NCBI GenBank assembly: GCA_002269645.1
Contig: NIVC01002778.1
Span: 1 to 64,000 of the forward strand
DNA: 64,000 nucleotides
Reading direction: 5' to 3'
DNA from: Macrostomum lignano
Taxonomy: Eukaryota
The position numbers and the translations under genes are program-made. The notes beneath the pieces were generated by a model. It was not told where the DNA came from. It did no database searches and was given only the letters and a program-made list of their open reading frames with translations. Of the stretch, positions 16,765 through 61,295 are shown piece after piece. Positions within the stretch are counted from its first letter, which is position 1. Each line of letters starts with the position of its first letter.

Positions 16765-17075
16765 AATAATAATAATAATATAATTGATTACACCTGCCCA
16801 ATGGGCAGATGTGCAACCGACAGCTCAGCCGCAGCTATTGCGCGGCGCATCTGAAGGCTGCGTACGGCTGTTCAGTCCAAGGACTGGGGGTCGCCACACA
16901 CACCCTCAATTACCCCAGCTAATGCTGGTACCCATTTTACAGCTGGGTAAACTGAAGCAACGCAGAGTTAAGTGTCTTGCTCAAGGACACAAATTGTTGC
17001 AGAGGGATCGGGAATCGAACCCCCGACCTTCAAGTCGTGAGTCCGACGCCCTAACCACTAGGCTACAACCCCCTA
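16765..17075 (-). mobile_element. tRNA-derived SINE with CORE-like central domain
   Basis: Minus strand has A box TAGCCTAGTGG, B box GGTTCGATTCC, a CORE/MIR-like GTGTCCTTGAGCAAGACACTTAAC...CTGTAAAATGGG segment and an (ATT)n tail. Confidence 0.8.
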
Positions 17076-18421: not shown

Positions 18422-20170
<1,749 letters not shown>

Positions 20171-34850: not shown

Positions 34851-35070
34851 GCGCCTTTTTTATGATATTCAGGACAGATTAAGATAAGTTCCGCTCATAA
34901 AACGCACCGCAGGAAGTCTCGTAGGTTACATATTATTTGTTTAGTAATCCTTGATAGAGCTTGAACAGCTGCCTAGCACTAAGCACTTAGTAGTCCTTGT
35001 TTCCCGCAAGAAATTATAAAAGTCCTTGGCCCTGATTCATTCAGCGCAACAGCTGGGGGCGAACGGCGCA

Positions 35071-39809: not shown

Positions 39810-41811
39810 ATGCGATTAAAAGACAAACGCAGCTTTCTGTTGCTAGTTTTGTTGGTCTCCTCAGCCAGTCCGTTACCGGCCAATCCGATTAAGCAGCACA
39901 GATGCAAGCCGGGTAAGTATTTCGATGAGGACCTGGCTGGCTGTCTGCCCTGCCCCCGCCTTCTTGAAAACCCGGAGTCCTATCTGAAGTCGTTCGCATC
40001 AGTACACCCCGAGTGTCCGTATGCGCCGCCGCCTACTCCGGTCGAGACCACCATGACTTCGACTGTCAGAGGTGAGTTCATGCCATGGGAAACCATGTGA
40101 ACATTGTGTACGTATTTTTGGCTACACTCTGAGCTGTTGGTTCCATGTAGCTGGTATGGGAGCCCTGTAGACATTGTGTAGTTATTGTTGGTCATATTCT
40201 ACGTTTACGTCACAAGTTAATTGAAATTCTTTACCTGAACAACTCTAATATCTTAGGGGTCACTCTTTCGATAAACTGTTTCCCCCGGAAAGTATGATAT
40301 TAGAGTTGAGCATATTGATCAATTTTAATTAGTCATTAGATCCATGTTTGCGAAGGGAAATCCATGGGTATCCCACGGGTGTACAAGTCTATTTTTAGAT
40401 ACAAGAGCCGAGGACGACTTAAGTAGAAGGACCGGAAACCTCGTTTCTTGGAAAAAAAATTAAGGCAGTCATTTCTGAAAAAATACACAGAGACAGAAGG
40501 TTTTAATTTTTTTCAGCGCAAAAACTGTTATTGGGCCGTATGAATAAAACGTGAGAAAATCTTTAAAGATTATCTTTCGAGCCAAGAATTGCTTTCGATA
40601 GGAGGTAGACCCAGTGTTCATCTTTTGATGTGTTGTGCATTTCTTATAGCTCTATTGATATTCATAAAGCTTCTTGTTCAGAAAATTAGGATTCTATGCT
40701 AATTTTTTATTCTACGTATATTTCCTGTACCTAAATATCATAAAAATGCATGACACAGCTCGAATTTTTGGTTTTGTGAATTTATTTTATCATCTCGGTT
40801 ACACATATTGTTACACAGTCAGCTAAGAATTATAAAATGGATTCATAAAACCAATGAGCTGAGCCGTGTCATTTTAGACATTTTAGACATGCAAATGTAC
40901 GTAGAATAATAATTGAACATAGAATCCTAATTTCTGAAAAAATGCTTTGTGAATCCCAATAGAGCTATACGGAAGGCACAGCATATCAAAAGATGAACAT
41001 TGTGTCTGCCTCCTATCGAAAGCAATAACAATTTTTGTGCTGAAAAAATTAAAACCTCCTATCTCTGTAGTGTAGAAAAGTTGCCTTCAAAACATTTACC
41101 ATAGATTTCGAGTGTTGCGTCCTTCTACTTAAGTTGTCCTTGTAAACTGTATCCCCGGAACTTAGTATGATATTAGAGTTAAACATATCGATTCATTTTA
41201 ATTAGTCATTAGAACCCCGTTGGCGAAGGGAAATCCATGGGTATCCCACGGGTGCACAAAGTCTATTTTTAGAAACAAGAACATATGACTTCAACTGCCT
41301 TACAGTTTCGAAAACAAGCCAAGTGCCGCCAACAACGCCAGCAGGCGGCAGCAGCTTTCCTACTGTTGGTGCTTCAACCAAAACCGAAGCGTCTACGACT
41401 CAACCTCCAGCATCGAGCCCAGTTGATACAACTGTTAGAAATGGTGGAGTCGTGGAAAGACACTTGCTCATTGCTTCAGTTGTCGTCATATTGGCTTTTT
41501 TCCTCGCCATTGTGTGCTACATCTGTCGCCGATATCTGCGGGCTTGTTTAAAACGGCTGAGCAGACGCCTGAAATGTGAGAATGCTCCCCCCAATCAGCT
41601 GGACAGAGAACAGAGTCAAAGCCTAAATCAAGTCCTAAGCCACAGTCGCGACCAAGACCCAAGCAACAACAAAGACCCAAGCAACGACCAAGACCCAAGC
41701 AACGACCAAGACCCGGACCGAAGCCACAGACGGAATCAAGACCCACAGCCTCATCGCAAGAATCCCAACATGACAGAAAATCCCAAGCTTTTCGAGTCTG
41801 AAAGGGATTAA
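39810..41811 (+). CDS. Single-CRD TNFR-like type I membrane protein, paralog 1; exons 39810-40071, 41306-41811
   Basis: Signal peptide (SFLLLVLLVSSASP); CKPGKYFDEDLAGCLPC has the same C-x12-C-x2-C spacing as the BCMA A1 module; T/P-rich stalk; TM LLIASVVVILAFFLAIVCYIC; phase-1 GT/AG intron is in frame. Confidence 0.75.
40409..41142. mobile_element. Tc1/mariner-like MITE with long imperfect inverted arms in paralog-1 intron
   Basis: 40409-40700 is the reverse complement of ~40915-41142 (e.g. AGGACGACTTAAGTAGAAGGAC / GTCCTTCTACTTAAGTTGTCCT); TA follows the right end. Confidence 0.65.
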
Positions 41812-42774
41812 ACTTTTCGAGTTACAAGTAGTGCTCATTCGACTGCGTTCACAGAGGAATAATTTGAAAAAATTGACTCATTGCGGCTCCGCGAGTGGTC
41901 GTCTTTTGGCTGAAGGTCAATGCGAAAGCGATTCAGAGTTTGTAACACCAAATCCCATTCTGGCAAGACTCTGAAATCGAAGCCTGGCTTTAACGACAGT
42001 CTGCATAGCCGGTTGGTTCGTTGGAGTTCGAGTTTCTCCTTACAAAGAAAATGTGAATCGTGCTCATCAACTTCCTAGCAGCGAGCATTCATCCAAATAA
42101 ACAAAAATGTTTCATACCAGGATTGCGCTCGTCATGTGTTTATAATAATTCTAATAAATATTTGAATGTGTCATTATTTATGAAGATTCAAACATTAACT
42201 TCATTCCAAATCTTTCCTTGTAAATAGCTCGTAGCTACTCATATATTTTCTAGAAGCAGATGTACTATCAATCATTAATTTTGTTGATTAACCACAAAAT
42301 ACAAAATGCTTAAATTTCTAATCATTCTCAGTTTTAAAAAAATAATTTTCTGTCCTACAGCGAAATACAATTTTTATTTTATTTCAACTATTTAGTGAGC
42401 AGTCCTCAGAAGTTCGTGGGGGGCGGGGGGGCAAAACTTCGACATGCACGAGCGTGGGCATATCTTTGCTGCTCTAGATTGAATGGATGGTTTCTTAGTA
42501 AACAATTAACACGTTGAGCCTTTTTTTAGAAACTAGCTTTCAGCACGCACATGGGCTATTTTCCACAATGTACGAGCGCACGAGCGTACACTAAAAAATC
42601 TTGGCAATTCCACCGCTATTCCACGGAAATTCAAAAGAATTTCTGCTTCTGCATTGTAGACTATAATAACTAGGTTGAATAGGTGCGCTCCAATTAAAAC
42701 TTTCGAATATTATCTTCTCTCCTCTCTGCCTAACTATATACGAGCTATCTACCTGAACTGAACTGAATTGAAGT

Positions 42775-43009
42775 ATGCAGCTGAGCAAACTGCTGCTATT
42801 TATGTTAGTGGCCTGCTCAGCCATTCAAACACTCGGCGCACCGGTCGTCAGGCCGAAATGCGAGCTTGGCGAATATCCAGATGCTTTGGTTGACTGCCTG
42901 CCCTGTCCCAGCCTGGAGGGAAATACGGAAGACTATCTGAAGACATTCGCGAACCAGCACAAGGAGTGCCCGTATCCGCCTCCGGCCACCTGGACTGCCA
43001 CTACCGAGG
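42775..43009 (+). CDS. Single-CRD TNFR-like paralog 2, exon 1 (signal peptide + CRD)
   Basis: MQLSKLLLFMLVACSAIQTLGAPVVRPKCELGEYPDALVDCLPCPSLEGNTEDYLKTFANQHKECPYPP; phase-1 donor G|GTGAG. Confidence 0.75.
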
Positions 43010-43061
43010 GTGAGCTTTCTTTGTTGTATTTGCTCCCTTGGTTCCATTTTTGATTCAAAAT

Positions 43062-44005
43062 TTTGGTTCCATGTTGGCAGTATGTAAACTCTGTGGGCAT
43101 TCTGCAGTTGCTAATTGTGGGTAAACCTTGAAGAATTTGGTTCCATGTTGGCAGTATGTAAACTCTGTGGTCATTCTGCAGTTGCTACAGTGGGTAAACC
43201 TTGAAGAATTTGGTTCCATGTTGGCAGTATGTAAACTCTGTGGGCATTCTGCAGTTGCTACAGTGGGTAAACCTTGAAGAATTTGGTTCCATGTTGGCAG
43301 TATGTAAACTCTGTGGTCATTCTGCAGTTGCTACAGTGGGTAAACCTTGAAGAATTTGGTTCCATGTTGGCAGTATGTAAACTCTGTGGGCATTCTGCAG
43401 TTGCTACAGTGGGTAAACCTTGAAGAATTTGGTTCCATGTTGGCAGTATGTAAACTCTGTGGGCATTCTGCAGTTGCTACAGTGGGTAAACCTTGAAGAA
43501 TTTGGTTCCATGTTGGCAGTATGTAAACTCTGTGGGCATTCTGCAGTTGCTAATTGTGGGTAAACCTTGAAGAATTTGGTTCCATGTTGGCAGTATGTAA
43601 ACTCTGTGGGCATTCTGCAGTTGCTAATTGTGGGTAAACCTTGAAGAATTTGGTTCCATGTTGGCAGTATGTAAATTCTGTGGTCATTCTGCAGTTGCTA
43701 ATTGTGGGTGAACCTTGAAGAATTTGGTTCCATGTTGGCAGTATGTAAACTCTGTGGGCATTCTGCAGTTGCTACAGTGGGTAAACCTTGAAGAATTTGG
43801 TTCCATGTTGGCAGTATGTAAATTCTGTGGTCATTCTGCAGTTGCTAATTGTGGGTGAACCTTGAAGAATTTGGTTCCATGTTGGCAGTATGTAAACTCT
43901 GTGGGCATTCTGCAGTTGCTATAGTGGGTAAACCTTGAAGAATTTGGTTCCATGTTGGCAGTATGTAAACTCTGTGGGCATTCTGCAGTTGCTAATTGTG
44001 GGTAA
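43062..44005. repeat. 73-74-bp tandem repeat (~13 units) at the start of paralog-2 intron
   Basis: TTGGTTCCATGTTGGCAGTATGTAAACTCTGTGGGCATTCTGCAGTTGCT...AAACCTTGAAGAAT units. Confidence 0.95.
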
Positions 44006-45164
44006 TCATATTGCTGTATTTATACTCTGCAACATTGAACAGCCGCTACTCTATGCGCCAGTGAGCAATTTCTCTTAGAATATTCTGAAATAATAGACAC
44101 GAGACAACTGATCGGGGTAGCTTTAATCCGTCCAACCCTCGCAAACCGCTCCCCCACTTCATTCCTCAACTCAAGTCTGCCGCGTGGCGTAGCTAAGTTG
44201 CGTCACTCGCAAAGATTGAGAGACTCCACTCTTTACTTGCATTCTCAAAAGTGGCGACCCACAGATGGAATCTTCTGAGTACACATGCAATATGTGCCGT
44301 GGTAACTTGGCCTGCGTGCGCGCCGGGGGCGGGTGCTGGGTTAAGTTGTTTTGATGTCTCTCACTCTCTCGCTGAATGTACTTTGCTAGCGCGGGGTGGG
44401 GATAGTCGTGAGCCAGACGATATCGATAATAAACAGTTTCTCTATAAAACAGGCTTTTTAGCCTGCAATGTTGTTTGTGCTTTACTGTGTCACAATAAAG
44501 TTCTGACTTGACTTTATTTTACAATCACAATATACTAAATCCTATATACTAAAAATGTGATGTCTATATATATATATATATATATGTGATAGATTGGAGA
44601 AAAAATGGCTGGACCGATTTTGTTCGAACTTGCACTGTTCGATCAGAAATTTTCCCGTGACGGTACATGCATTATGGCTAAGAAATTGCTCGATGCTAAA
44701 GGCATTAAATATTCGAAAAACATGCTTTTTTTGCAAAGGTCAAGCAAACTTTTTGACTTGAAATGCATTGTAAGAATGCTAGAGAAAAAACTGACTGGTT
44801 GAATTCTGACTCTGAAATAGATTGCATCATAACTGAATTGTAACTCCGACTTGAATTGAAAATGCAGTGTGGAAGCGTAGCACCAGACTTGATTTAAATT
44901 GCGTAACCATATTGTTAACTGATACTGACTGACTGAGAAACTGATTATGTCATAACTGCTTCGTGTGATTTACTCTATGCTTTGATTTAAAAGTGTTGAG
45001 TTATATAAGTGCAAAAGTTGATGTTATTAAAACGATGAGAGCTAGCCTAGAGGTGAACAAACTGAACTGCTAAATGCAGTGACGATGGTTTGAATTTTCA
45101 TAGAGTATAATTTTTTAATTAAATCTTTTCAACGTCAGGAAAACTAAAAGACTTTTTAAAAAGA

Positions 45165-48100
45165 AGCGTCATGTAAAAATCGTAGAAGCGTCATGTAAAA
45201 AATCATAGAAGCGTCATGTAAACAATCATAGAAGTGTCATGTAAAAAATCGTAGAAGCGTCATGTAAAAAATCATAGAAGCGTCATGTAAACAATCATAG
45301 AAGTGTCATGTAAAAAATCATAGAAGCGTCATGTAAACAATCATAGAAGCGTCATGTAAACAATCATAGAAGCGTCATTTAAACAATCATAGAAGCGTCA
45401 TGTAAAAAATCGTAGCAGCGTCATGAAAAAATCATAGAAGCGTCATTTAAAAAATCATAGAAGCGTCATGTAAACAATCATAGAAGCGCCATGTAAACAA
45501 TCATAGAAGCGTCATTTAAAAAATCATAGAAGCGTCATGTAAAAAATCGTAGCAGCGTCATGAAAAAATCGTAGAAGCGTCATGTAAAAAATCATAGAAG
45601 CGTCATGTAAACAATCATAGAAGCGCCATGTAAACAATCATAGAAGCGTCATTTAAAAAATCATAGAAGCGTCATGTAAACAATCATAGAAGCGTCATGT
45701 AAAAAATCATAGAAGCGTCATTTAAAAAATCATAGAAGCGTCATGTAAACAATCATAGAAGCGTCATGTAAAAAATCATAGAAGCGTCATGTAAAAAATC
45801 ATAGAAGCGTCATGTAAACAATCATAGAAGCGTCATGTAAACAATCATAGAAGCGTCATGTAAACAATCATAGAAGCGTCATGAAAAAATCATAGAAGCG
45901 TCATGTAAAAAATCATAGAAGCGTCATGTAAACAATCATAGAAGCGTCATGTAAACAATCATAGAAGCGTCATGAAAAAATCATAGAAGCGTCATGTAAA
46001 CAATCATAGAAGCGTCATGTAAAAAATCATAGAAGCGTCATTTAAAAAATCATAGAAGCGTCATGTAAACAATCATAAAAGCGTCATGTAAAAAATCATA
46101 GAAGCGTCATGTAAAAAATCATAGAAGCGTCATGTAAACAATCATAGAAGCGTCATGTAAACAATCATAGAAGCGTCATGTAAACAATCATAGAAGCGTC
46201 ATGTAAAAAATCATAGAAGCGTCATTAAAAAATCATAGAAGCGTCATCTAAAAAATCGTAGAAGCGTCATGTAAGAAATCATAGAAGCGTCATGTAAAAA
46301 TCATAGAAGCGTCATGAAAAAATCATAGAAGCGTCATAAAAAATCATAGAAGCGTCATTAAAAAATCATAGAAGCGTCATGTAAACAATCATAGAAGCGT
46401 CATGTAAAAATCATAGAAGCGTCATGTAAAAATCATAGAAGCGTCATGTAAACAATCATAGAAGCGTCATGTAAACAATCATAGAAGCGTCATGTAAAAA
46501 TCATAGAAGCGTCATGTAAACAATCATAGAAGCGTCATGTAAACAATCATAGAAGCGTCATGTAAAAAATCATAGAAGCGTCATGTAAACAATCATAGAA
46601 GCGTCATGTAAACAATCATAGAAGCGTCATGTAAACAATCATAGAAGCGTCATGTAAACAATCATAGAAGCGTCATGTAAACAATCATAGAAGCGTCATG
46701 TAAACAATCATAGAAGCGTCATGTAAACAATCATAGAAGCGTCATGTAAAAAATCGTAGAAGCGTCATGAAAAAATCATAGAAGCGTCATTTAAAAAATC
46801 ATAGAAGCGTCATGTAAACAATCATAGAAGCGTCATGTAAACAATCATAGAAGCGTCATTAAAAATCATAGAAGCGTCATGTAAACAATCATAGAAGCGT
46901 CATGTAAACAATCATAGAAGCGTCATGTAAACAATCATAGAAGCGTCATGTAAACAATCATAGAAGCGTCATGTAAAAAATCATAGAAGCGTCATGTAAA
47001 CAATCATAGAAGCGTCATGTAAACAATCATAGAAGCGTCATGTAAACAATCAAGAAGCGTCATGTAAACAATCATAGAAGCGTCATTAAACAATCATAGA
47101 AGCGTCATGTAAAAAATCATAGAAGCGTCATGAAAAAATCATAGAAGCGTCATTTAAAAAATCATAGAAGCGTCATGTAAACAATCATAGAAGCGTCATG
47201 TAAACAATCATAGAAGCGTCATTAAAAAATCATAGAAGCGTCATGTAAACAATCATAGAAGCGTCATGTAAACAATCATAGAAGCGTCATGTAAACAATC
47301 ATAGAAGCGTCATGTAAACAATCATAGAAGCGTCATGTAAACAATCATAGAAGCGTCATTAAAAATCATAGAAGCGTCATGTAAACAATCATAGAAGCGT
47401 CATGTAAACAATCATAGAAGCGTCATGTAAAAATCATAGAAGCGTCATGTAAACAATCATAGAAGCGTCATGTAAAAAATCATAGAAGCGTCATGTAAAC
47501 AATCATAGAAGCGTCATGTAAAAATCATAGAAGCGTCATGTAAAAATCATAGAAGCGTCATGTAAAAATCATAGAAGCGTCATGTAAACAATCATAGAAG
47601 CGTCATGTAAAAATCATAGAAGCGTCATGTAAAAATCATAGAAGCGTCATGTAAACAATCATAGAAGCGTCATGTAAACAATCATAGAAGCGTCATGTAA
47701 AAAATCATAGAAGCGTCATGTAAACAATCATAGAAGCGTCATGTAAACAATCATAGAAGCGTCATGTAAAAATCATAGAAGCGTCATGTAAACAATCATA
47801 GAAGCGTCATGTAAACAATCATAGAAGCGTCATGTAAACAATCATAGAAGCGTCATGTAAACAATCATAGAAGCGTCATGTAAACAATCATAGAAGCGTC
47901 ATGTAAACAATCATAGAAGCGTCATGTAAACAATCATAGAAGCGTCATGTAAAAATCATAGAAGCGTCATGTAAAAATCATAGAAGCGTCATGAAAAATC
48001 ATAGAAGCGTCATGTAAAAATCATAGAAGCGTCATGTAAACAATCATAGAAGCGTCATGTAAACAATCATAGAAGCGTCATGTAAAAATCATAGAAGCGT

Positions 48101-51100
48101 CATGTAAACAATCATAGAAGCGTCATGTAAACAATCATAGAAGCGTCATGTAAACAATCATAGAAGCGTCATGTAAACAATCATAGAAGCGTCATGTAAA
48201 CAATCATAGAAGCGTCATGTAAACAATCATAGAAGCGTCATGTAAAAAATCATAGAAGCGTCATGTAAACAATCATAGAAGCGTCATGTAAACAATCATA
48301 GAAGCGTCATGTAAAAAATCATAGAAGCGTCATGTAAACAATCATAGAAGCGTCATGTAAAAATCATAGAAGCGTCATGTAAAAAATCATAGAAGCGTCA
48401 TGTAAACAATCATAGAAGCGTCATGTAAAAATCATAGAAGCGTCATGTAAAAAATCATAGAAGCGTCATGTAAACAATCATAGAAGCGTCATGTAAACAA
48501 TCATAGAAGCGTCATGTAAACAATCATAGAAGCGTCATGTAAAAATCATAGAAGCGTCATGTAAAAATCATAGAAGCGTCATGTAAACAATCATAGAAGC
48601 GTCATGTAAACAATCATAGAAGCGTCATGTAAAAAATCATAGAAGCGTCATGTAAACAATCATAGAAGCGTCATGTAAAAATCATAGAAGCGTCATGTAA
48701 AAAATCATAGAAGCGTCATGTAAACAATCATAGAAGCGTCATGTAAAAATCATAGAAGCGTCATGTAAAAATCATAGAAGCGTCATGTAAACAATCATAG
48801 AAGCGTCATGTAAACAATCATAGAAGCGTCATGTAAAAATCATAGAAGCGTCATGTAAACAATCATAGAAGCGTCATGTAAAAATCATAGAAGCGTCATG
48901 TAAACAATCATAGAAGCGTCATGTAAACAATCATAGAAGCGTCATGTAAAAATCATAGAAGCGTCATGTAAACAATCATAGAAGCGTCATGTAAACAATC
49001 ATAGAAGCGTCATGTAAAAATCATAGAAGCGTCATGTAAAAATCATAGAAGCGTCATGTAAAAATCATAGAAGCGTCATGTAAAAATCATAGAAGCGTCA
49101 TGTAAAAATCATAGAAGCGTCATGTAAAAATCATAGAAGCGTCATGTAAAAAATCATAGAAGCGTCATGTAAACAATCATAGAAGCGTCATGTAAAAATC
49201 ATAGAAGCGTCATGTAAAAAATCATAGAAGCGTCATGTAAACAATCATAGAAGCGTCATGTAAACAATCATAGAAGCGTCATGTAAAAATCATAGAAGCG
49301 TCATGTAAACAATCATAGAAGCGTCATGTAAACAATCATAGAAGCGTCATGTAAAAAATCATAGAAGCGTCATGTAAACAATCATAGAAGCGTCATGTAA
49401 ACAATCATAGAAGCGTCATGTAAACAATCATAGAAGCGTCATGTAAACAATCATAGAAGCGTCATGTAAACAATCATAGAAGCGTCATGTAAACAATCAT
49501 AGAAGCGTCATGTAAAAATCATAGAAGCGTCATGTAAAAATCATAGAAGCGTCATGTAAAAATCATAGAAGCGTCATGTAAACAATCATAGAAGCGTCAT
49601 GTAAACAATCATAGAAGCGTCATGTAAAAATCATAGAAGCGTCATGTAAACAATCATAGAAGCGTCATGTAAACAATCATAGAAGCGTCATGTAAACAAT
49701 CATAGAAGCGTCATGTAAACAATCATAGAAGCGTCATGTAAAAATCATAGAAGCGTCATGTAAACAATCATAGAAGCGTCATGTAAACAATCATAGAAGC
49801 GTCATGTAAACAATCATAGAAGCGTCATGTAAACAATCATAGAAGCGTCATGTAAACAATCATAGAAGCGTCATGTAAAAATCATAGAAGCGTCATGTAA
49901 AAATCATAGAAGCGTCATGTAAAAATCATAGAAGCGTCATGTAAACAATCATAGAAGCGTCATGTAAAAATCATAGAAGCGTCATGTAAACAATCATAGA
50001 AGCGTCATGTAAACAATCATAGAAGCGTCATGTAAAAATCATAGAAGCGTCATGTAAAAATCATAGAAGCGTCATGTAAACAATCATAGAAGCGTCATGT
50101 AAAAATCATAGAAGCGTCATGTAAAAATCATAGAAGCGTCATGTAAACAATCATAGAAGCGTCATGTAAACAATCATAGAAGCGTCATGTAAAAATCATA
50201 GAAGCGTCATGTAAACAATCATAGAAGCGTCATGTAAAAATCATAGAAGCGTCATGTAAAAATCATAGAAGCGTCATGTAAAAATCATAGAAGCGTCATG
50301 TAAAAATCATAGAAGCGTCATGTAAAAATCATAGAAGCGTCATGTAAAAATCATAGAAGCGTCATGTAAAAATCATAGAAGCGTCATGTAAAAATCATAG
50401 AAGCGTCATGTAAACAATCATAGAAGCGTCATGTAAACAATCATAGAAGCGTCATGTAAAAATCATAGAAGCGTCATGTAAACAATCATAGAAGCGTCAT
50501 GTAAACAATCATAGAAGCGTCATGTAAAAATCATAGAAGCGTCATGTAAACAATCATAGAAGCGTCATGTAAACAATCATAGAAGCGTCATGTAAAAATC
50601 ATAGAAGCGTCATGTAAACAATCATAGAAGCGTCATGTAAACAATCATAGAAGCGTCATGTAAACAATCATAGAAGCGTCATGTAAAAATCATAGAAGCG
50701 TCATGTAAAAATCATAGAAGCGTCATGTAAAAATCATAGAAGCGTCATGTAAAAATCATAGAAGCGTCATGTAAACAATCATAGAAGCGTCATGTAAACA
50801 ATCATAGAAGCGTCATGTAAAAATCATAGAAGCGTCATGTAAAAATCATAGAAGCGTCATGTAAACAATCATAGAAGCGTCATGTAAAAATCATAGAAGC
50901 GTCATGTAAACAATCATAGAAGCGTCATGTAAACAATCATAGAAGCGTCATGTAAACAATCATAGAAGCGTCATGTAAAAATCATAGAAGCGTCATGTAA
51001 ACAATCATAGAAGCGTCATGTAAACAATCATAGAAGCGTCATGTAAACAATCATAGAAGCGTCATGTAAACAATCATAGAAGCGTCATGTAAACAATCAT

Positions 51101-53900
51101 AGAAGCGTCATGTAAACAATCATAGAAGCGTCATGTAAAAATCATAGAAGCGTCATGTAAACAATCATAGAAGCGTCATGTAAACAATCATAGAAGCGTC
51201 ATGTAAAAATCATAGAAGCGTCATGTAAACAATCATAGAAGCGTCATGTAAAAATCATAGAAGCGTCATGTAAAAATCATAGAAGCGTCATGTAAAAATC
51301 ATAGAAGCGTCATGTAAACAATCATAGAAGCGTCATGTAAAAATCATAGAAGCGTCATGTAAAAATCATAGAAGCGTCATGTAAAAATCATAGAAGCGTC
51401 ATGTAAAAATCATAGAAGCGTCATGTAAACAATCATAGAAGCGTCATGTAAAAATCATAGAAGCGTCATGTAAAAATCATAGAAGCGTCATGTAAAAATC
51501 ATAGAAGCGTCATGTAAAAATCATAGAAGCGTCATGTAAACAATCATAGAAGCGTCATGTAAACAATCATAGAAGCGTCATGTAAACAATCATAGAAGCG
51601 TCATGTAAAAATCATAGAAGCGTCATGTAAACAATCATAGAAGCGTCATGTAAACAATCATAGAAGCGTCATGTAAACAATCATAGAAGCGTCATGTAAA
51701 AATCATAGAAGCGTCATGTAAACAATCATAGAAGCGTCATGTAAACAATCATAGAAGCGTCATGTAAAAATCATAGAAGCGTCATGTAAACAATCATAGA
51801 AGCGTCATGTAAACAATCATAGAAGCGTCATGTAAACAATCATAGAAGCGTCATGTAAACAATCATAGAAGCGTCATGTAAAAATCATAGAAGCGTCATG
51901 TAAACAATCATAGAAGCGTCATGTAAAAATCATAGAAGCGTCATGTAAAAATCATAGAAGCGTCATGTAAAAATCATAGAAGCGTCATGTAAAAATCATA
52001 GAAGCGTCATGTAAAAATCATAGAAGCGTCATGTAAAAATCATAGAAGCGTCATGTAAAAATCATAGAAGCGTCATGTAAACAATCATAGAAGCGTCATG
52101 TAAACAATCATAGAAGCGTCATGTAAAAATCATAGAAGCGTCATGTAAACAATCATAGAAGCGTCATGTAAAAATCATAGAAGCGTCATGTAATCATAGA
52201 AGCGTCATGTAAACAATCATAGAAGCGTCATGTAAAAATCATAGAAGCGTCATGTAAACAATCATAGAAGCGTCATGTAAAAATCATAGAAGCGTCATGT
52301 AAACAATCATAGAAGCGTCATGTAAACAATCATAGAAGCGTCATGTAAACAATCATAGAAGCGTCATGTAAAAATCATAGAAGCGTCATGTAAACAATCA
52401 TAGAAGCGTCATGTAAACAATCATAGAAGCGTCATGTAAAAATCATAGAAGCGTCATGTAAAAATCATAGAAGCGTCATGTAAACAATCATAGAAGCGTC
52501 ATGTAAAAATCATAGAAGCGTCATGTAAAAATCATAGAAGCGTCATGTAAAAATCATAGAAGCGTCATGTAAAAATCATAGAAGCGTCATGTAAAAATCA
52601 TAGAAGCGTCATGTAAACAATCATAGAAGCGTCATGTAAAAATCATAGAAGCGTCATGTAAAAATCATAGAAGCGTCATGTAAAAATCATAGAAGCGTCA
52701 TGTAAACAATCATAGAAGCGTCATGTAAAAATCATAGAAGCGTCATGTAAACAATCATAGAAGCGTCATGTAAACAATCATAGAAGCGTCATGTAAAAAT
52801 CATAGAAGCGTCATGTAAAAATCATAGAAGCGTCATGTAAACAATCATAGAAGCGTCATGTAAAAATCATAGAAGCGTCATGTAAAAATCATAGAAGCGT
52901 CATGTAAACAATCATAGAAGCGTCATGTAAAAATCATAGAAGCGTCATGTAAAAAATCATAGAAGCGTCATGTAAACAATCATAGAAGCGTCATGTAAAC
53001 AATCATAGAAGCGTCATGTAAAAATCATAGAAGCGTCATGTAAACAATCATAGAAGCGTCATGTAAACAATCATAGAAGCGTCATGTAAAAATCATAGAA
53101 GCGTCATGTAAAAAATCATAGAAGCGTCATGTAAACAATCATAGAAGCGTCATGTAAACAATCATAGAAGCGTCATGTAAAAATCATAGAAGCGTCATGT
53201 AAACAATCATAGAAGCGTCATGTAAACAATCATAGAAGCGTCATGTAAAAATCATAGAAGCGTCATGTAAACAATCATAGAAGCGTCATGTAAAAATCAT
53301 AGAAGCGTCATGTAAACAATCATAGAAGCGTCATGTAAACAATCATAGAAGCGTCATGTAAAAATCATAGAAGCGTCATGTAAAAATCATAGAAGCGTCA
53401 TTAAAAATCATAGAAGCGTCATGTAAACAATCATAGAAGCGTCATGTAAAAATCATAGAAGCGTCATGTAAAAATCATAGAAGCGTCATGTAAAAAATCA
53501 TAGAAGCGTCATGTAAAAATCATAGAAGCGTCATGTAAAAATCATAGAAGCGTCATGTAAACAATCATAGAAGCGTCATGTAAAAATCATAGAAGCGTCA
53601 TGTAAAAATCATAGAAGCGTCATGTAAACAATCATAGAAGCGTCATGTAAACAATCATAGAAGCGTCATGTAAACAATCATAGAAGCGTCATGTAAACAA
53701 TCATAGAAGCGTCATGTAAAAATCATAGAAGCGTCATGTAAACAATCATAGAAGCGTCATGTAAACAATCATAGAAGCGTCATGTAAAAATCATAGAAGC
53801 GTCATGTAAAAATCATAGAAGCGTCATGTAAAAATCATAGAAGCGTCATGTAAAGCGTCAATCATAGAAGCGTCATGTAAAAATCATAGAAGCATAGAAG
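45165..53900. repeat. Satellite array, 22-23-bp unit AATCATAGAAGCGTCATGTAAA[C/A/-] (roughly 390 units)
   Basis: Continuous tandem array read directly; more variant units at the left edge. Confidence 0.98.
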
Positions 53901-54344
53901 CCTCATTTAAAAAGTAATGAAAGTGTCATTTAAAATATTAAGAAGCATCATGGTAGAATAAAAGAAGCGTCATGTCAGACATGAAGGGTGTCATGTAAAA
54001 ATTAAATGAAGTTATAATGCTGTGCTGGGGAGAATTACTGAGATGTCAAGGCTCTCAGAGAATAACTTAGATTACGGGGGGGGTTTCTGAGATGTCAAAG
54101 CAATAGTCAGAGGCTATTTCAAAGTTCATGTACTTTACTCAATTTTTTATTGCATTCTTTGTTGGCTCGCCACGGGGGGGGGGCGCTGATAAAAAAGCGT
54201 AATGTAAAAAATAAAAGAAGCTTCACGTCGAAGTTAAGAGATTCATTTGGGAATCCCTACGATGTCGAGGCTTGCAGGGAATCGCTATAATGCTGTAGTA
54301 GTGCTATAATGACTCTCAGAGAGAATTACTGAAATTTCAATGCT

Positions 54345-54405
54345 TTAGGGTTAGGTTAGGGTTAGGGTTAGGCTAGGGTTAGGGTTAGGCTAGGGTTAGG
54401 GTTAG
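54345..54405 (+). repeat. Interstitial telomere-like repeat (TTAGGG with TTAGG/CTAGGG variants)
   Basis: TTAGGGTTAGGTTAGGGTTAGGGTTAGGCTAGGGTTAGGGTTAGGCTAGGGTTAGGGTTAG. Confidence 0.9.
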
Positions 54406-55224
54406 AAGGTTGACAGATATTTTTAGATTTCCAAGGCTTATTGGGGGCATTGCTGAGATGTCAATGGGGGAAGTTGATATGTTAAAGCTTGTGGGGGGGA
54501 GTTATTGACATGTCAAGGCTTACAAGGTTTGACAGGAGATTTTTTTAGATTTCAAGGAAATATGTAGCTTATTAAAAAACGTGTATTGCATTTCTTTGGC
54601 TCCCCAACGGGGGGCGTAGATTGCTAGTACATCCTATATACTAAAAATGAGTTGTCTGTGGGTAGGTATGCGATAGATTTCAGAAAAATTGGCTCAACCG
54701 ATTTTCTTCAAACTTGCACCATTCGATCAGAAATTTTCCTGGGACGGTACATGCATCTTGGCTAAGAAATTGCTCAATGTTAAAGGGATTAAATATTCGA
54801 AAAACCTGCTTTTTTGCAAAGGTCAAGCAAAATTTTCGACTTGAAATGCATTGTAAGAATGCTAGAGAAAAAACTGACTGGCTGAATTCCGATTGTGATA
54901 AAGATTGCATCACAACAAGTTGAAAACAGTGTCAAAGAAATGCACACACGACTTGAATGAAATTGTGTAACCATATTGGCAACTTAAATTGAGACTGATT
55001 CTGGCTGACTGAGAAATTGATTATGTCATAACTTTTTACTCCAATTGACTTGCTGTAAGAATTGAATTATAAGGGCCACAATTTATGTTCTCCAATTGAA
55101 AAAGATAGCCCAGATGCGAACAGACTGGAATGCTAATGTAGCGACTTGGGTTCGAATCTTAGTAGGGCAAAAAAGATTTTTTTTTATTAAAACACCTTAA
55201 AAACACAAAACTTCTAAACATAAA

Positions 55225-57640
55225 AGAAGCGCAATGTCAAACATAGAAGAGCCACCATGTCGAACATAAAAGAGCTAACATATCGAATATTAAAGAGCCA
55301 CCATGTCAAACCTAAACGAGCCACCATGTCTAATATTTAAGAGGCACCATATAAAACATATAAGTGACTTTATGTCAAACATAAAAGAGCCACCATTTCT
55401 AACATTAAACAGCCACCATTTCGAACATTAAAGAGCCACCATGTCGAAAATAAAAGAGTCACTATTTCGAACATCAAAGAGCCACTATGTCAAACATTTA
55501 GGAGCCACTTTTTCGAACATTAAAGAGCCACCATGTCAAACATAAAAGAGCCAACATGTCAAACATAAAAGAGCCAACATGTCAAACATAAAGAGCCACC
55601 ATGTCAAACATTTAAGAGCCACCATGTCAAACATATATGTGACTTTGTGTTAAACATTAAAGAGCCACCATTTCGAACATTAAAGAGCCACCATGTCAAA
55701 CATGAAAGAGCTATAACATGAAGAATATTAAAGAGCCACCATGTCGAACATAAAAGAGCTGCCATGTAAAATAACAAAGAGCTACCAAGTTAAACATAAA
55801 AGAGCCACCATGTAAAACATTAAAGAGCCACCATGTTAAACATTTAAGAGCCTTCGTGTCAAACCTAGAAGAGCCACCATGTCGAACATAACAGAGCTAC
55901 CATGTCAAACATTAAAGAGCCACCATGTCAAACATTCAAAAGCCACATTGTCAAACATTGAAGAGCCACTATGTCAAACATTTAGGAGCCACTTTGTCGA
56001 ACATTAAAGAGCCAACATGTCAGACATTAAAAAAGCCACCGTATCAAATAAAAAGAGTTAACATGTAGAACAAAAAAGAGCCACCATTTCGAACATAAAA
56101 GAGCCAACATGTCAAACATAAAGAGCCACCATGTCAAACATTTAAGAGCCACCATGTCAAACATATATGTGACTTTATGTCAAACATTAAAGAGCCACCA
56201 TTTCGGACATAACAGAGCTACCATGTCAAACATTAAAGAGCCACCATGTCGAACAAAAAAGAGCAACCATGTAAAACATTAAAGAGCCACCATGTCAAAC
56301 ATTAAAGAGCCACCATGTCGACCATAAAAGAGCCACTATTTCGAACATTAAATATCCACCATGTCAAACATAAAAGAGCCAACATGTCAAACATAAAAGA
56401 GCCAACATGTCAAACATAAAGAGCCACCATGTCGAAAATGAAAGAGCCACTATTTCGAACATTAAAGAGCCACCATTTCGAACATTAAAGAGCCACCATG
56501 TCGACCATAAAAGAGCCACCATGTCAAACATGAAAGAGCTATGACATGAAGAATATTAAAGAGCCACCATGTCGAACATTAAAGAGCCACCATGTCGAAC
56601 ATTTAAGAGCCACCATGTTAAACCTAAAAGAGCCACCATGTTAAACCTAAAAGAGCCACCATGTTAAACCTAAAAGAGCCACCATGTTAAACCTAAAAGA
56701 GCCACCATGTTAAACCTAAAAGAGCCACCATGTTAAACCTAAAAGAGCCACCATGTTAAACCTAAAAGAGCCATCATGTCAAACCTAAAAGAGCCACCAT
56801 GTCGAACACTTAAGAGCCACAATGTAAAATATTAAAGAGCCACCATTTCGAACATATAAGTGACTTTATGTCAAACATTAAAGAGCCACCATGTCAAACA
56901 TTAAAGAGCCACCATGTAAAACAAAAGAGCCACCATTTCGAACATTAAAGAGCCACCATGTCAAACATTTAAGAGCCACCATGTTAAACATAAAAGAGCC
57001 ACCATGCAGAATATTAAAGAGCCACTATGTTGAACATTAAACAGCCATCATGTCAAACCTAAAAGATCCACAATTTCGAACACTTAAGAGCCACAATGTA
57101 GAATATTAAAGAGCTACCATGTCAAACATTTAAGAGCCACCATGTCAAACATTTAAGAGCCACCATGTAAAACATTAAAGAGCCACCATTTGAAACATTA
57201 AAGAGTCACCATGTCAAACATTTAAGAGCCACCATGTCAAACCTAAAAGAGCCACCATGTCGAACATAAAAGAGCTATACCATGAAAAACATTAAAGAGC
57301 CACTTTCTCGAACATTAAGGAGCCACCATGTCAAACATTTAAAAGCCACCTTGTCAAACATTAAATAGCCACTTTGTCGAACATTAAAGAGTCACTGTGT
57401 CAAACATAAAAGAGCCACTGTTTCAAACATAAAAGAGCCACCAGGTTAAACATTAAAGAGCCACCATGTCAAACAATAAAGAGGCACCATGTCAAACATA
57501 AAAGAGCCACCATGTAAAACATAAAAGAGCCACCATGTCTGACATTAAAAAGCCATCGTTTCAAACATAAAACAGTTGCCATGTAGAACTTAAAACAGCC
57601 ACCATGTCAAACATAAAATTTACACAATTTCAAACATAAA
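55225..57640. repeat. Degenerate ~23-bp array (AAACATTAAAGAGCCACCATGTC)
   Basis: About 100 variable tandem units. Confidence 0.93.
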
Positions 57641-57699
57641 AGTAAGCGAATTTTAAAGGAGCCACTATAATGCTAAGGAAATTATCGCACTAGCTACTT

Positions 57700-57995
57700 A
57701 TTGTCTGGTGGATGCTTGCTATTTGGGGATGCTATCTATGTAGGGGATGCTTGCTATCTGGCGGATGCTTGCTATCTGGGGGATGCTTGCTATCTGGGGG
57801 ATGCTTGCTATCTGGGGGTTGCTTGTAATCTGGAAGATGCCTGCTATCTGGCGGATGCTTGCTATCTGGGGGATGCTTGCTATCTGGGGGATGCTTGCTA
57901 TCTGGGGGATGCTTGCTATCTGGGGGATGCTTGCTATCTGGGGGTTGCTTGTAATCTGGAAGATGCTTGCTATCTGGGGGATGCTTGCTGTCTTG
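57700..57995. repeat. 18-bp minisatellite (GGGGATGCTTGCTATCTG) near the 3' end of Helitron B
   Basis: About 16 units. Confidence 0.93.
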
Positions 57996-58177
57996 GGATG
58001 ATTTCTTTTTGCATTGCACTTCCTTTGAGTATTTTGTCTGTTTTTTTTTGTGAAGGCCTTTTTTGGCTATCTTTTTGTTACTTGTAGAGAACAGAGGTTC
58101 TATACAGATGTCCCCCAACGGGGTGCGAAGATTGCTAGTCTAAACTAATTGAGAAGTCTATATACAATTTTCCGCAG

Positions 58178-58497
58178 CCTCGAGCCCAGCAGCCTCAAAA
58201 CTGTCGACTGTGAGCTCGCCCACCGAGAACCCGGCACAGACACTGCCACCATGGGCTGCTGTAGTATTGGTGGCACTGTCTCTGCTGCTGCTGCTGGCTG
58301 GATGCGGCATCGCAGCTGCACTGCGCCCTGCGGTGTGTCGCAGGATGCTCGCATGCGACAGCAAAGCCGACGCTTCGGAGGCTGCAGTGGCGCCCGTCAG
58401 TGAGCCGGAAGCTCGGGAGCTGCTGGTGAGGCCGAAGAGCACCACCAGCCCCCAGATGCCGATAGTGGAGACTCAGCCTCGTGTTTCTGTCGTATAA
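58178..58497 (+). CDS. Single-CRD TNFR-like paralog 2, exon 2 (stalk, TM, cytoplasmic tail)
   Basis: Acceptor TTTTCCGCAG is phase-compatible with the 43009 donor; TM WAAVVLVALSLLLLLAGCGIAAAL; tail ends ...PQMPIVETQPRVSVV. Confidence 0.7.
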
Positions 58498-58811
58498 AAA
58501 CATTGCTGTGGAGGGTTTGATCTCCATGCTGGGCTCTCCACAGCTGGAATGTCAAATTAATGAGCTCGCTTTCCAAAATCCCGAATTATGTTACTGGTGT
58601 ATATAAGGCCAGCATTCCCTTTCTGATTTGCACGGTCTTTCACCTCTAGCAAAATTATTTATTGTAAGTTCTGAATTGTCCAAGTGTACAGAATCTAAAA
58701 ATAGCAAGATTGCTAATGTCTATTTTTTGATTCCGTCCGTTCATTCCATGGTTTTTCCGTAGATTCCCCTTATTCATTCTTCTGTATCTGTACCCCGCCC
58801 GGCTCAATGTC

Positions 58812-60062
58812 GCCCCGTCGAACTTTTCACCCGGAATTATTTCCGGAATTTTGTGATCCGGGCCCGATTTTTAATTTATTTCCGGGTGAACGCCCGGATC
58901 AGCTTTTTTGGCCCGGAACAGCCCCTTTTTCCGGAAAAAGATCCGGAAATATGATCCGGTAAAAATTTCGGGAAAAGGAAAGCTGTTCCGGTTGGATTTT
59001 CCGGAATTTTTCACCCGGAACACTATGGAATTCTGGGTGTACACCCGAATTTCAGTAGTGTTCCGGGTGAAAATGTTCCGGTGAGATTTCGGGACTTCAG
59101 TCGGAATTCTCCAGTGATCCGGACCAAATGATCCGGAAAATTCACCTGGATCAGCTCCCTTGACCCGAATTTCAGCCAAATTCCGGGCAAAGCTGATCCG
59201 GGAAAATTTCGGGACTTGAGTCGGAATCAATCCGGCATCCATTATACAAGCACCATGGGGATTTTGAGAGGAAGCCTCCGATGGAAAACCGCTGAATACA
59301 GACCCCAGCAAATGGCTATCCCATCAGGCAATCCCTGGCATCCATTTGGTCAACGGCGCTAATTCCTCTTGGAAAGCGAGGGGTAATAAAGCCTCGAGTA
59401 GCCAATGTCGCGATAAGGTATATAAAACCGTATACGGCTTCAAAAAAAGTTAATGGTAGCATCGAAGTCCAGCTGCCCATCCGAGTGACATTCAGAAGGT
59501 CAGCATTTTTTGTTTCTGAAAGTACGTAGAAGTGCATAGAAATATACGATTTACAGTTGTGCACAACTGAATTCAGTATTTCTGTTCGTGGACGGCTAAA
59601 TCGAATTCGATTCAATTCGTAGTCGTGGAAAATGTATGGAACAATGACCCGTTCTTTATTTAATTTTCTGTTACTGTGATAAGCCCAAGATTTGGCTGCA
59701 AATCCGGTTCAATCATCCAGAATTCACCTGGATTCGTGTGCTGATCCGGTTCACTCGCCCGGAATTCGCCCGGATTTGTGTGCTGATCCGGTTCAATCTC
59801 CCGGAATTCGCCCGGATTTGTGTGCTGATCCGGTTCACTCGCCCGGAATTCGCTCGGAACTGTCACGGGAATTTTTTTATTGATCCGGGTCAATTTTCTG
59901 GAATTTTTCTTTTTGATCCGGAAAATTCGCCCGGATTCTGTAAACTTTCGTTACAGATCCGGAATTTCCACCCGGATCGGATTGCATTACTGGAATATGA
60001 AAAAATTCCGGGTGAACGCAAAAAATTCCGGGCGAAATTCCGGGTGAAAAGTTCGACGGGGC
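58812..60062. mobile_element. Non-autonomous TIR element with dense CCGG-containing sub-terminal repeats
   Basis: GCCCCGTCGAACTTTTCACCCGGAATT at the left is the reverse complement of AATTCCGGGTGAAAAGTTCGACGGGGC at the right. Many TTCCGG/ATCCGG motifs in both arms; no TSD discerned. Confidence 0.75.
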
Positions 60063-60107
60063 AGCGCATTTTTGACAAATCTGCCTGAAAGCAATGCGCA
60101 AGACAAT

Positions 60108-61295
60108 ATGAAGCACTTCGTGCTGCACTTGGCTGTGGCTCTGACGGTCCTCCTTGCCGCGGACTGCACTCCCGTCAGCGACTGCCAGCCTGGAGAATAC
60201 CCTGACACCAACTCAGGGCTTTGCCTTGCCTGTCCAGGTCCCACGTCCGCTCTGTCGCGTTCTTAAAGTCGTTTTCTCTGGCGCACCCAGAATGTGCGAA
60301 CCCGTCAGGCCGCGCGACTACCGTCTCGGGTGAGGTCGCCATTCTTTAATGACGAATTTTCTGTATAAACTTGATTAGATGTCAGGAGTAGTGCAAAGCC
60401 GAAAGCAGATATTAAAGTCCCTCTTCTGAAAGCAAGAACAACCACTCTAAAATTTAAGAGGCCCAGATCCAGACAATTCTAAGAAGACTTTTCTGATTAT
60501 CTTGATTAATTTCCGTGCATCAGAGATAAAGCATTTCTAGCTCACGGTTCCATGTTGGCATGGAAATTCCATGGAATTTCCGTGAAATAGTTGTGTCCCT
60601 GAGCCGCAAGGCCCAATTCTGCTTAATCGTCAGCGTACTTTAGCGAAGTTTAAAGTAGTCTAAATCATTATAATAAGAGAATTCCAATTAAAATTCAGAT
60701 TTAAAAAATAGTTCCATATTTCAAAGGAAAACCCGTGGAAATTACCCACACCTGCACGAGCTATTTATAGAAACAAAAAGAAATTCAAAGTGCAGCCTAA
60801 CTAACTTCCATCTAGAAAGCTGTCTTTTATTCATTTTTTGACAGACCAACCTGATGGCAAGGTGATACCAAATCAGCTGAGCGAAATCAGTGGCCACGAA
60901 GATTCGCAACGACCGATGCAGACCGGACCCGGCTGAGTTCTGCAGACGCTTTTTTGGACAACAACAGAACTGACAGAGCGCCAGAGAAGACTGCAGATCG
61001 CAACAACGATGCTCAAATGCTGGAAGTCAAGCTGACTGATAGAAACTACTGGTTGATGCCACTGCTCTGCGTCCTGCTCGCTTCGGCTGCGATTGCTGGC
61101 ACCTGCTGCTGCAACTTCTGCCCCAGATGCTCTGGACTCGCGTCCTGCTTGAAGCGCGGCAACTTGCAGCTGGTCGGCACCAGGACAGACCGGACTGACT
61201 CTGCTCTACTAGCCAATGGCGAGCTGCAGGGCGCTACTGTCATGGACACTCCAAGAACGCTAATGTGGGAGGCCAGCAGCGCCAGTCCTGCATAG
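60108..61295 (+). pseudogene. Single-CRD TNFR-like paralog 3, frameshifted; exon 1 60108-60329, exon 2 from 60845 or 60946 to 61295
   Basis: MKHFVLHLAVALTVLLAADCTPVSDCQPGEYPDTNSGLCLACP, then a 1-nt deletion before FLKSFSLAHPECANP (cf. YLKSFASVHPECPY); phase-1 donor; TM WLMPLLCVLLASAAIAGTCCC. Could be a sequencing error. Confidence 0.65.

Follow-up and report, generated by a model that had tools for sequence, protein, structure and literature searches.

The tumour necrosis factor (TNF) receptor superfamily (TNFRSF) includes receptors whose ligand-binding part is reduced to a single small or partial cysteine-rich domain (CRD). Human BCMA (TNFRSF17; PDB 1xu2, 1oqd, 4zfo) consists of one small N-terminal CRD, a transmembrane (TM) helix and a short tail free of a death domain; its CRD has six Cys, paired in three disulfides, and a helix-loop-helix as second module. 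BCMA has no signal peptide and is a type III protein. CRD2 of TACI (TNFRSF13B) and the CRD of BAFF-R (TNFRSF13C), each minimal or partial, bind ligand with a hairpin that carries the motif D-x-L, and Grindelwald of Drosophila (PDB 6zsy) and Fn14 (TNFRSF12A) are single-CRD, type I receptors without a death domain. Here we describe a tandem cluster of small two-exon genes of comparable plan in the flatworm Macrostomum lignano. The cluster lies on contig NIVC01002778.1 of assembly Mlig_3_7 (GCA_002269645.1), of which positions 1-64000 were analysed (hereafter the window, to which all coordinates refer); from 32775 onward contig and window agree in every base, with coordinates unchanged. Its three paralogs, P1, P2 and P3, are all on the + strand and extend from the P1 ATG at 39810 to the P3 stop at 61293-61295. 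The locus is best explained as two transcribed genes, P1 and P2, followed by one recently disabled copy, P3. The analysis supports the view that the first Cys hairpin of their ectodomains is like that of BCMA and the TNF receptor (TNFR) A1 module, and on balance we lean toward P1 and P2 being lineage-specific, BCMA-grade minimal members of the TNFRSF, their homology to TNF receptors being inferred; membership in the superfamily is not established.

What is known of TNF receptors in flatworms? The described receptor, SmTNFR/NGFR-like, combines several canonical CRDs with a predicted death domain, and the only study dedicated to flatworm TNF receptors reports it as a single-copy gene, one receptor per species, without diversification (Bertevello et al. 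2020, PMC7519573). This receptor of the same phylum also occurs in M. lignano, and its ligands presumably belong to the family considered here. Unlike it, the family described here has one partial CRD, no death domain and a clustered, tandem organization, and falls outside the study of Bertevello et al. Ten endogenous TNF ligand sequences have been reported for M. lignano, and parasitic flatworms, unlike M. lignano, have not kept such ligands (PMC7519573). A later preprint counts six Eiger homologs in M. lignano, together with 16 Wengen-like and one Grindelwald-like homologs that are counted without description and may or may not include P1 and P2 (bioRxiv 10.1101/2024.07.27.603686). Our literature searches found no paper naming the P1 or P2 accessions or the locus tag.

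Gene structure of the cluster

P1, P2 and P3 are true tandem paralogs. Because the region is extremely repeat-rich, one must ask whether the exon pairs might be chance open reading frames or repeat-derived sequence rather than genes. Several observations stand against this. In tblastn comparisons P1 and P2 match at E=2e-14, with nonsynonymous divergence (dN) well below synonymous divergence (dS), and P3, with its frameshift bridged, matches P1 at E=1e-8. Consensus splice sites and intron phase are conserved: the donors of all paralogs read GTGAG, the P1 and P2 introns are phase 1, and P1 exon 1 closes in phase 1 before GTGAGT, with the GT donor at 40072. All 184 amino acids (aa) of the predicted P2 protein are identical (100%) in the transcript-derived GenBank protein PAA55265.1 (BOX15_Mlig029935g1; UniProt A0A267E136), and the P1 splice junction, ...TSTVR/VSKTSQ..., is identical in the UniProt model A0A1I8I8D5 (193 aa). 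The Mlig_3_7 annotation rests on RNA sequencing (RNA-seq), with StringTie/TACO assembly, a de novo transcriptome and open reading frames called by TransDecoder (PMC5730564); it was built from RNA-seq transcripts and so lends transcript support to the 15-kb P2 splice. We regard the notion of chance reading frames as effectively refuted, its probability being negligible. A fourth copy was found by tblastn neither in the window nor in the 4.5 kb beyond it.

The original prediction, made from the DNA sequence alone, had described three genes of shared two-exon, phase-1 architecture at 39810-61295, one of them with a 15-kb intron. The span is right, the three peptide motifs that it quoted lie on the + strand where it had placed them (39903-39953 in P1, 42859-42906 in P2 and 60183-60233 in P3), and the long intron is that of P2, at 15,168 nt. 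The architecture holds for P1 and P2, whose database proteins reproduce both junctions, and fails for P3, where the frame is disrupted. The expectation that automated annotation would miss these genes was mistaken: A0A1I8I8D5 (P1) and A0A267E136 (P2) each carry the UniProt name TNFR-Cys domain-containing protein, and P2 is in GenBank as well.

Database versions of the two genes differ from ours in some details. P1 of Mlig_3_7 encodes a protein of 255 aa, versus the 193 aa of A0A1I8I8D5, which ends in ...PPISWTENRVKA. The discrepancy comes down to a single base in the CCCCCAAAT run near 41590 (window about 41575-41625), explained either by an indel separating the assemblies or by a frameshift between alleles. 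A look-up of the contig encoding A0A1I8I8D5 found no gene on record for that product. For P2, a further UniProt entry, A0A1I8IT47, joins exon 1 to a 43-aa exon and is named 'Laminin N-terminal domain-containing protein'. The 43-aa exon is in neither the window nor the 4.5 kb beyond, and the entry is probably either a chimera or a model taken from another locus copy in the older assembly.

Paralog 3

The ATG frame of P3, starting at 60108, passes through CQPGEYPDTNSGLCLAC and ends at a TAA at 60264-60266. The conserved segment that should follow, FLKSFSLAHPEC (FLKSF...HPEC), begins at 60260 and is offset by +2 from the ATG frame; therefore, one base is missing or two are extra between 60234 and 60260. 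Exon 1 still closes in phase 1, at 60329, when read in the shifted frame. The exon-2 junction is also impaired. The strong acceptor tttattcattttttgacag (AG at 60843-44, 80% pyrimidines) leads to a TGA at 60934-36, and the only acceptor in frame with the TM frame is a weak one (AG at 60875-76, 40% pyrimidines, exon start 60877). In Mlig_3_7 the locus thus does not hold three intact genes, and P3 is probably a recently disabled copy, a pseudogene.

Could P3 nevertheless be an intact third gene, its indels being errors of a PacBio-based assembly, or with the weak acceptor at 60876 in use? The shifted frame of exon 1 retains every family-invariant residue of the second module, besides the phase-1 end. 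Exon 2 retains the TM helix, the juxtamembrane Cys motif and a 146-codon open frame; we estimate the probability of so long an open frame arising by chance at about 0.001. In addition, the P1 tail provides a 1-nt indel discrepancy between assemblies at the same locus (~41590). On the other side, Mlig_3_7 was already polished by Pilon with Illumina and RNA-seq reads (PMC5730564), and the exon-1 indel lies outside any homopolymer run. An intact P3 requires two independent problems, and the in-frame acceptor has a pyrimidine fraction of 0.40 versus 0.80 for its out-of-frame neighbour. The P3 stalk is no longer rich in Ser, Thr and Pro (S/T/P content 22%, vs 56-59% in P1 and P2), and no P3-like protein is on record among about 5.8 billion clusters. 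We consider an intact P3 unlikely, and treat P3 in what follows as a disabled copy.

Two ways of rescuing P3 by splicing were rejected, a frameshift being preferred to both. Removal of a 31-nt mini-intron (60238-60268) leaves HPEC in the wrong frame. An upstream phase-1 donor, CAG/GTCCCA (60237/8), is poor and would skip the second module.

The predicted proteins

Each paralog encodes a hydrophobic signal segment at the N-terminus and a single TM helix (Kyte-Doolittle maxima 2.15-3.03), with the CRD between them. The predicted topology, a single-pass membrane protein with an extracellular CRD, is that required of a TNFRSF member. The ectodomain has about 38 residues and four Cys, spaced C-x11/12-C-x2-C-x20-C, and the residues invariant in the family are C, G, Y, D, C-L-x-C-P, L-K-x-F and H-x-E-C. 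All three second exons share a juxtamembrane motif, CRRYLRAC in P1, CRRMLAC in P2 and CPRCSGLASC in P3, whose Cys residues are possible palmitoylation sites. Otherwise the tails are short and unalignable between copies, and the stalks have likewise diverged past alignment. The tip of the first Cys hairpin is also variable. D-A-L, at residues 15-17 of the 52-mer and between the predicted strands, is found in P2 only; in P1 the tip reads D-E-D-L, its Leu displaced by one position, and in P3 D-T-N-S-G-L. Most of what had been predicted about the proteins is borne out here, including the signal-peptide-like N-terminus, the four ectodomain Cys, the single TM helix, the lack of a death domain, the D-x-L of P2, and the differences between copies in hairpin loops and tails. 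The segment (Y/F)LK(S/T)F...H(P/K)EC is indeed present in all three copies, in P3 only in the +2 frame.

The P1 and P2 ectodomains were modelled with AlphaFold2 (AF2), with predicted local distance difference test (pLDDT) values of 72 and 77, and of about 80 in the hairpin part. Both models show a beta-hairpin (strands at about residues 12-15 and 20-23) and, after it, a helix of 10 residues spanning YLKSF...H. In the A1 module of TNF receptors, the beta-hairpin is closed by a C1-C2 disulfide.

The family had been proposed to be diversifying. P1 and P2 can be aligned over 43 CRD codons, which give dN=0.32 and dS=1.24, for a ratio (omega) of ~0.26, in a sample that is tiny and with dS near saturation; omega is 0.15 for the hairpin and 0.34 for the second part. 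The ratio of ~0.26 therefore points to an old duplication under purifying selection, and not to evident diversification.

Homolog searches, and a scan of 1.84 billion representative proteins by the family profile, retrieved as relatives only M. lignano proteins of the family, the other returns being repeat-driven. These false positives were Elysia CBM_14 repeats, an ephrin-like fragment, a junk repeat protein and a TPR protein whose match was to the YLKSF..HPE segment. The results support the existence of a lineage-restricted family, arranged in tandem, of small type-I membrane proteins.

Resemblance to TNF receptors

To what known proteins does the ectodomain correspond? In a Pfam search of 24,736 families with the CRDs (cut-offs 29.4 bits for TNFR_c6, 27 for BCMA-Tall_bind and 22.1 for CBM_14), the top two families for P1, each aligned only to residues 8-24 (C1-C3), were TNFR_c6 (E=0.026) and BCMA-Tall_bind (E=0.055). 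The P3 CRD matched TNFR_c6 at E=0.099. BCMA-Tall_bind was matched by P1 alone, at 14 bits vs the cut-off of 27, where a BCMA control scored 81 bits. With hhalign, the family profile aligned to verified BCMA with 52% probability (P=1.5e-4, 20 columns), and both BCMA and TACI CRD2 scored above all of 150 shuffles in which the Cys were held fixed. A Foldseek search of 350,542 PDB chains with the P1 model gave BCMA chains as the top 13 matches, the hairpins superimposing at 0.4-0.7 Å root mean square deviation with 44-47% identity and E-values of 0.6-2; Fn14, TACI, BR3 and Grindelwald were within the top 30. BCMA was again the top match of the P2 model. The UniProt 'TNFR-Cys domain-containing' name presumably stems from a PROSITE profile match.

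The likeness to BCMA is closest in the first module, which in P1 is equal in length and pattern, C-x12-C-x2-C with Y-F-D and C-[IL]-P-C, with 40-47% identity over 17-20 residues and a hairpin followed by a helical segment in both proteins. (The BCMA sequence quoted in the original prediction for this comparison is correct.) P2 has at its hairpin tip a D-A-L of the BCMA D-x-L type. Beyond the hairpin the proteins differ: BCMA has six Cys and two helices where the family shows four Cys and just one predicted helix, and the family proteins, unlike BCMA, have a signal peptide-like N-terminus and, in P1 and P2, a long mucin-like stalk. BAFF-R, like the family, has only four Cys, differently spaced; Grindelwald has eight and Fn14 six. 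TACI and BAFF-R are both among the Foldseek matches, TACI with an hhalign probability of only 20%. Grindelwald has the best TM-score on the Foldseek list, 0.44 over 46 columns at E=4, and an hhalign probability of 0.2%.

A number of results weigh against assigning the family to the TNF receptors. No TNFR match reaches a curated or database-wide threshold in Pfam, hhalign or Foldseek. The TNFR_c6 scores are 13-15 bits against the cut-off of 29.4 and cover only profile positions 1-18 of 39, P2 has no TNFR_c6 match in Pfam, and the Foldseek E-values of the two models are 0.6-5. Searches of the PDB with the whole protein sequences gave nothing significant and no TNFR, the family profile hit nothing in the PDB but a glutathione S-transferase, by chance, and no TNFR was among the returns from the 1.84 billion representative proteins; in Pfam, too, the whole proteins matched nothing significantly. 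The similarity of BAFF-R, Fn14 and Grindelwald is not above that of Cys-fixed shuffles, of which 14, 31 and 82 of 150, respectively, reach the real score. The resemblance is confined to the first ~17-20 residues, a beta-hairpin; C3 is followed by one predicted helix and just one further Cys, and no TNFR module aligns past column 25-30. Nor is the Foldseek ranking independent of sequence similarity, since Foldseek scores 3Di states together with amino acids, and AF2 may reproduce BCMA-like hairpins from its training.

Signalling motifs are also wanting. Pfam finds no death domain in the P1-P3 proteins. The tails lack the TRAF-binding motifs of BCMA, and a scan of the tails for TRAF2/3/6 motifs ([PSAT]x[QE]E, PxQxxD, PxExx[Ar/Ac], PxQx[TS]) found none, a crude regular-expression scan whose consensus may not fit flatworms.

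The hairpin is moreover not peculiar to TNF receptors. Ephrin_rec_like (PF07699) and CBM_14 (PF01607) hairpins share C-x2-G-x-Y-F-D-x5-C(-L-x-C-P) with the family. An Ephrin_rec_like protein aligns to the family profile with 94% probability over 41 columns and all four Cys, and a CBM_14 repeat with 40%, about as well as BCMA. In Pfam, CBM_14 matches P1 at E=0.059 (14 bits vs 22.1, with only the C-terminal third of the profile aligned, positions 28-45 of 53). These two controls are the best of 1.84 billion proteins, so that the comparison with TNFR targets chosen a priori is not symmetrical. Neither family accommodates P1-P3 as members. Ephrin_rec_like proteins are tandem arrays of hairpins, whereas the family has a single hairpin, a helix after C3-P and no tandem C-x2-C-P-x-G-x-Y repeats, and PF07699 has no Pfam match on P1-P3 at E<=10. 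CBM_14 domains are six-Cys chitin-binding units of secreted proteins, whereas the family has four Cys, scores under the cut-off, and places its hairpin and helix on a type-I membrane protein.

How much do negative sequence searches count against a receptor as small as this? A PDB search with BCMA itself retrieves neither TACI nor BAFF-R at E<=1e-3, and Grindelwald, a crystallographically proven TNFR, matches no Pfam family. By this calibration negative sequence searches carry little weight for minimal TNFRs, which are in general not detectable by sequence. The resemblance to TNF receptors is real but weak. The module announced as TNFR A1-like in the original prediction is partly supported: sub-threshold Pfam scores, hhalign and Foldseek agree on a BCMA-like hairpin, and that hairpin is not TNFR-specific. 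The fold comparison that had been proposed as a check comes out in the same divided way, with a BCMA-like hairpin, non-significant E-values, and Fn14 and Grindelwald sequences that do not rise above shuffles.

Receptors or mucin-like proteins?

A different account of P1 and P2 is that they are lineage-specific, mucin-like type-I proteins that serve in adhesion, the glycocalyx or some other role, with a convergent or generic hairpin and no binding of TNF ligands. The stalks of P1 and P2, more than half S/T/P, fit this account, as does a weak Pfam match to the sialomucin-type family MGC-24 (E=0.047). It would also explain why CBM_14 and Ephrin_rec_like proteins share the motif and fit the family profile at least as well as BCMA, why every TNFR match is sub-threshold and restricted to a short hairpin, why neither TRAF motif nor death domain was found, and why 1.84 billion proteins yielded no TNFR. 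It explains less well why BCMA and TACI, among the TNFR candidates chosen a priori, exceed all Cys-fixed shuffles, or why TNFR_c6 and BCMA-Tall_bind head the Pfam list of P1. UniProt's automatic annotation independently labels both proteins TNFR-Cys; the architecture of a single small N-terminal CRD, stalk, TM helix and short tail is that of BCMA, TACI, BAFF-R, Fn14 and Grindelwald; and M. lignano has TNF ligands that need receptors. We take the mucin-like account to be a substantial possibility, short of probable.

If P1 and P2 are receptors, as we favour, how might they work? The products are predicted to be small type-I membrane glycoproteins, built, from the N-terminus, of a signal peptide, the ~38-residue four-Cys ectodomain, a stalk, the TM helix, a Cys-Arg-Arg-x-Leu-x-Ala-Cys motif and a non-conserved tail. 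The ectodomain would consist of a BCMA-type TNFR A1 beta-hairpin (C1...C2-x2-C3) and then an alpha-helix, presumably tied back by a C3-C4 disulfide, a pairing that we infer. The variable hairpin tip, DEDL in P1 and DAL in P2, would insert in the groove of an endogenous trimeric TNF ligand, and clustering driven by the ligand might then signal via the juxtamembrane region or the tail through putative adaptors. A broader proposal is that M. lignano evolved ultra-minimal TNFRs, an A1 hairpin and a disulfide-tethered helix on a mucin stalk, that pair with its expanded set of endogenous TNF ligands; this we offer tentatively, as an idea that is more apt to be wrong than right.

Shared noncoding sequences, repeats and neighbouring genes

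Similarity among the paralogs is not limited to coding sequence. A leader, ATTGAAG, directly before the ATG is common to P1 and P2 (39799-39809 and 42764-42774), and AAGACAAT, in the upstream leader, is common to P3 and P1, from which it follows that the 5' leader was part of the duplicated unit. Just downstream of the exon-1 donor, all three paralogs carry a common intronic element. P1 has one copy (40137-40194), P2 has the amplified 73-bp unit listed in Table 1, and P3 has an exact 15-mer, GGTTCCATGTTGGCA, at 60546-60560, for which 0.19 matches are expected by chance. Identity between P1 and P2 is 67% in the element and 66% in the coding CRD. Its role may be regulatory or in splicing; alternatively, it may simply be what remains of the ancestral intron.

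The introns also contain other repeats. The foldback-type insertion of the P1 intron occupies 40291-41289, with long inverted arms at ~40398-40744 and 40872-41153, flanked by direct repeats of ~125 nt (40291-40415 and 41164-41289) that are 84-90% identical. Tandem satellite makes up ~12 kb of the P2 intron, where there is also a short TTAGGG-like, telomere-type 17-bp array (54345-54405).

The neighbouring genes that Table 1 places between 6635 and 36649 are unrelated to TNF signalling. The exon of the Otopetrin-family protein is missing from the called genes listed for the contig. A P/S-rich tandem array at 25585-28150 (+) is open in several frames, for up to 678 codons, and has a GC skew of -0.49.

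Table 1. Positions of the cluster's exons, introns and intronic arrays, and of other genes in the window.
Feature	Position	Strand	Description
P1 exon 1	39810-40071	+	Signal peptide, 4-Cys ectodomain (CKPGKYFDEDLAGCLPC...YLKSF...HPEC), start of P/T linker
P1 intron	40072-41305	+	1,234 nt; foldback-type repeat insertion and one copy of the intronic element
P1 exon 2	41306-41811	+	S/T/P-rich stalk, TM helix, CRRYLRAC, 89-aa DQDPSN-repeat tail, stop TAA
P2 exon 1	42775-43009	+	Signal peptide, 4-Cys ectodomain (CELGEYPDALVDCLPC...YLKTF...HKEC), D-A-L at predicted hairpin tip
P2 intron	43010-58177	+	15,168 nt, mostly tandem repeat
P2 intron, 73-bp array	43062-44005		12.8 copies of the intronic-element unit
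P2 intron, 23-bp satellite	45162-53893		8.7 kb, 386 copies, 96% matches
P2 intron, second 23-bp array	55216-57618		104 copies, more degenerate
P2 intron, 18-bp array	57704-57997		
P2 exon 2	58178-58497	+	S/T/P stalk, TM helix, CRRMLAC, 52-aa tail ending -SVV, stop TAA
P3 exon 1, disrupted	60108-60329	+	Signal peptide and CQPGEYPDTNSGLCLAC in ATG frame; FLKSFSLAHPEC in +2 frame
P3 intron	60330-60844	+	515 nt with strong acceptor; 547 nt to weak acceptor at 60876
P3 exon 2	60845-61295	+	146-codon open frame 60855-61292, stop TAG 61293-95; TM helix and CPRCSGLASCLKR
Otopetrin-family membrane protein	62571-63980	-	469-codon open exon; Pfam E=2e-10; convergent with P3
Adenosylhomocysteinase exon	19184-20170	+	
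RhoGAP exon	30972-31538	+	
LRR1-like gene	35050-36649	+	
C3HC4 RING exon	6635-7000	-	
tRNA	17003-17072	-	Sole Rfam match in the whole window

Implications

P1 and P2 are already in the databases as TNFR-Cys proteins and are undescribed in papers, so that the finding is real but modest, and the practical gain is modest under either reading of the proteins. If they are not receptors, then the C-x2-G-x-Y-F-D...C-x2-C hairpin is too generic for assignment to the TNFRs, which bears on automatic 'TNFR-Cys' labels. If, on the other hand, M. lignano does have minimal TNFRs of its own, the published picture of a single NGFR-like, non-diversified flatworm TNFR (PMC7519573) would be incomplete, and minimal receptors of the BCMA/BAFF-R grade would have arisen outside vertebrates and arthropods too. 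Should P1 and P2 bind ligand, they would be an independent example of extreme CRD minimisation. M. lignano is a model for regeneration and stem-cell biology, and such receptors would be tractable candidates, through RNA interference or transgenesis, for TNF signalling in regeneration or immunity.

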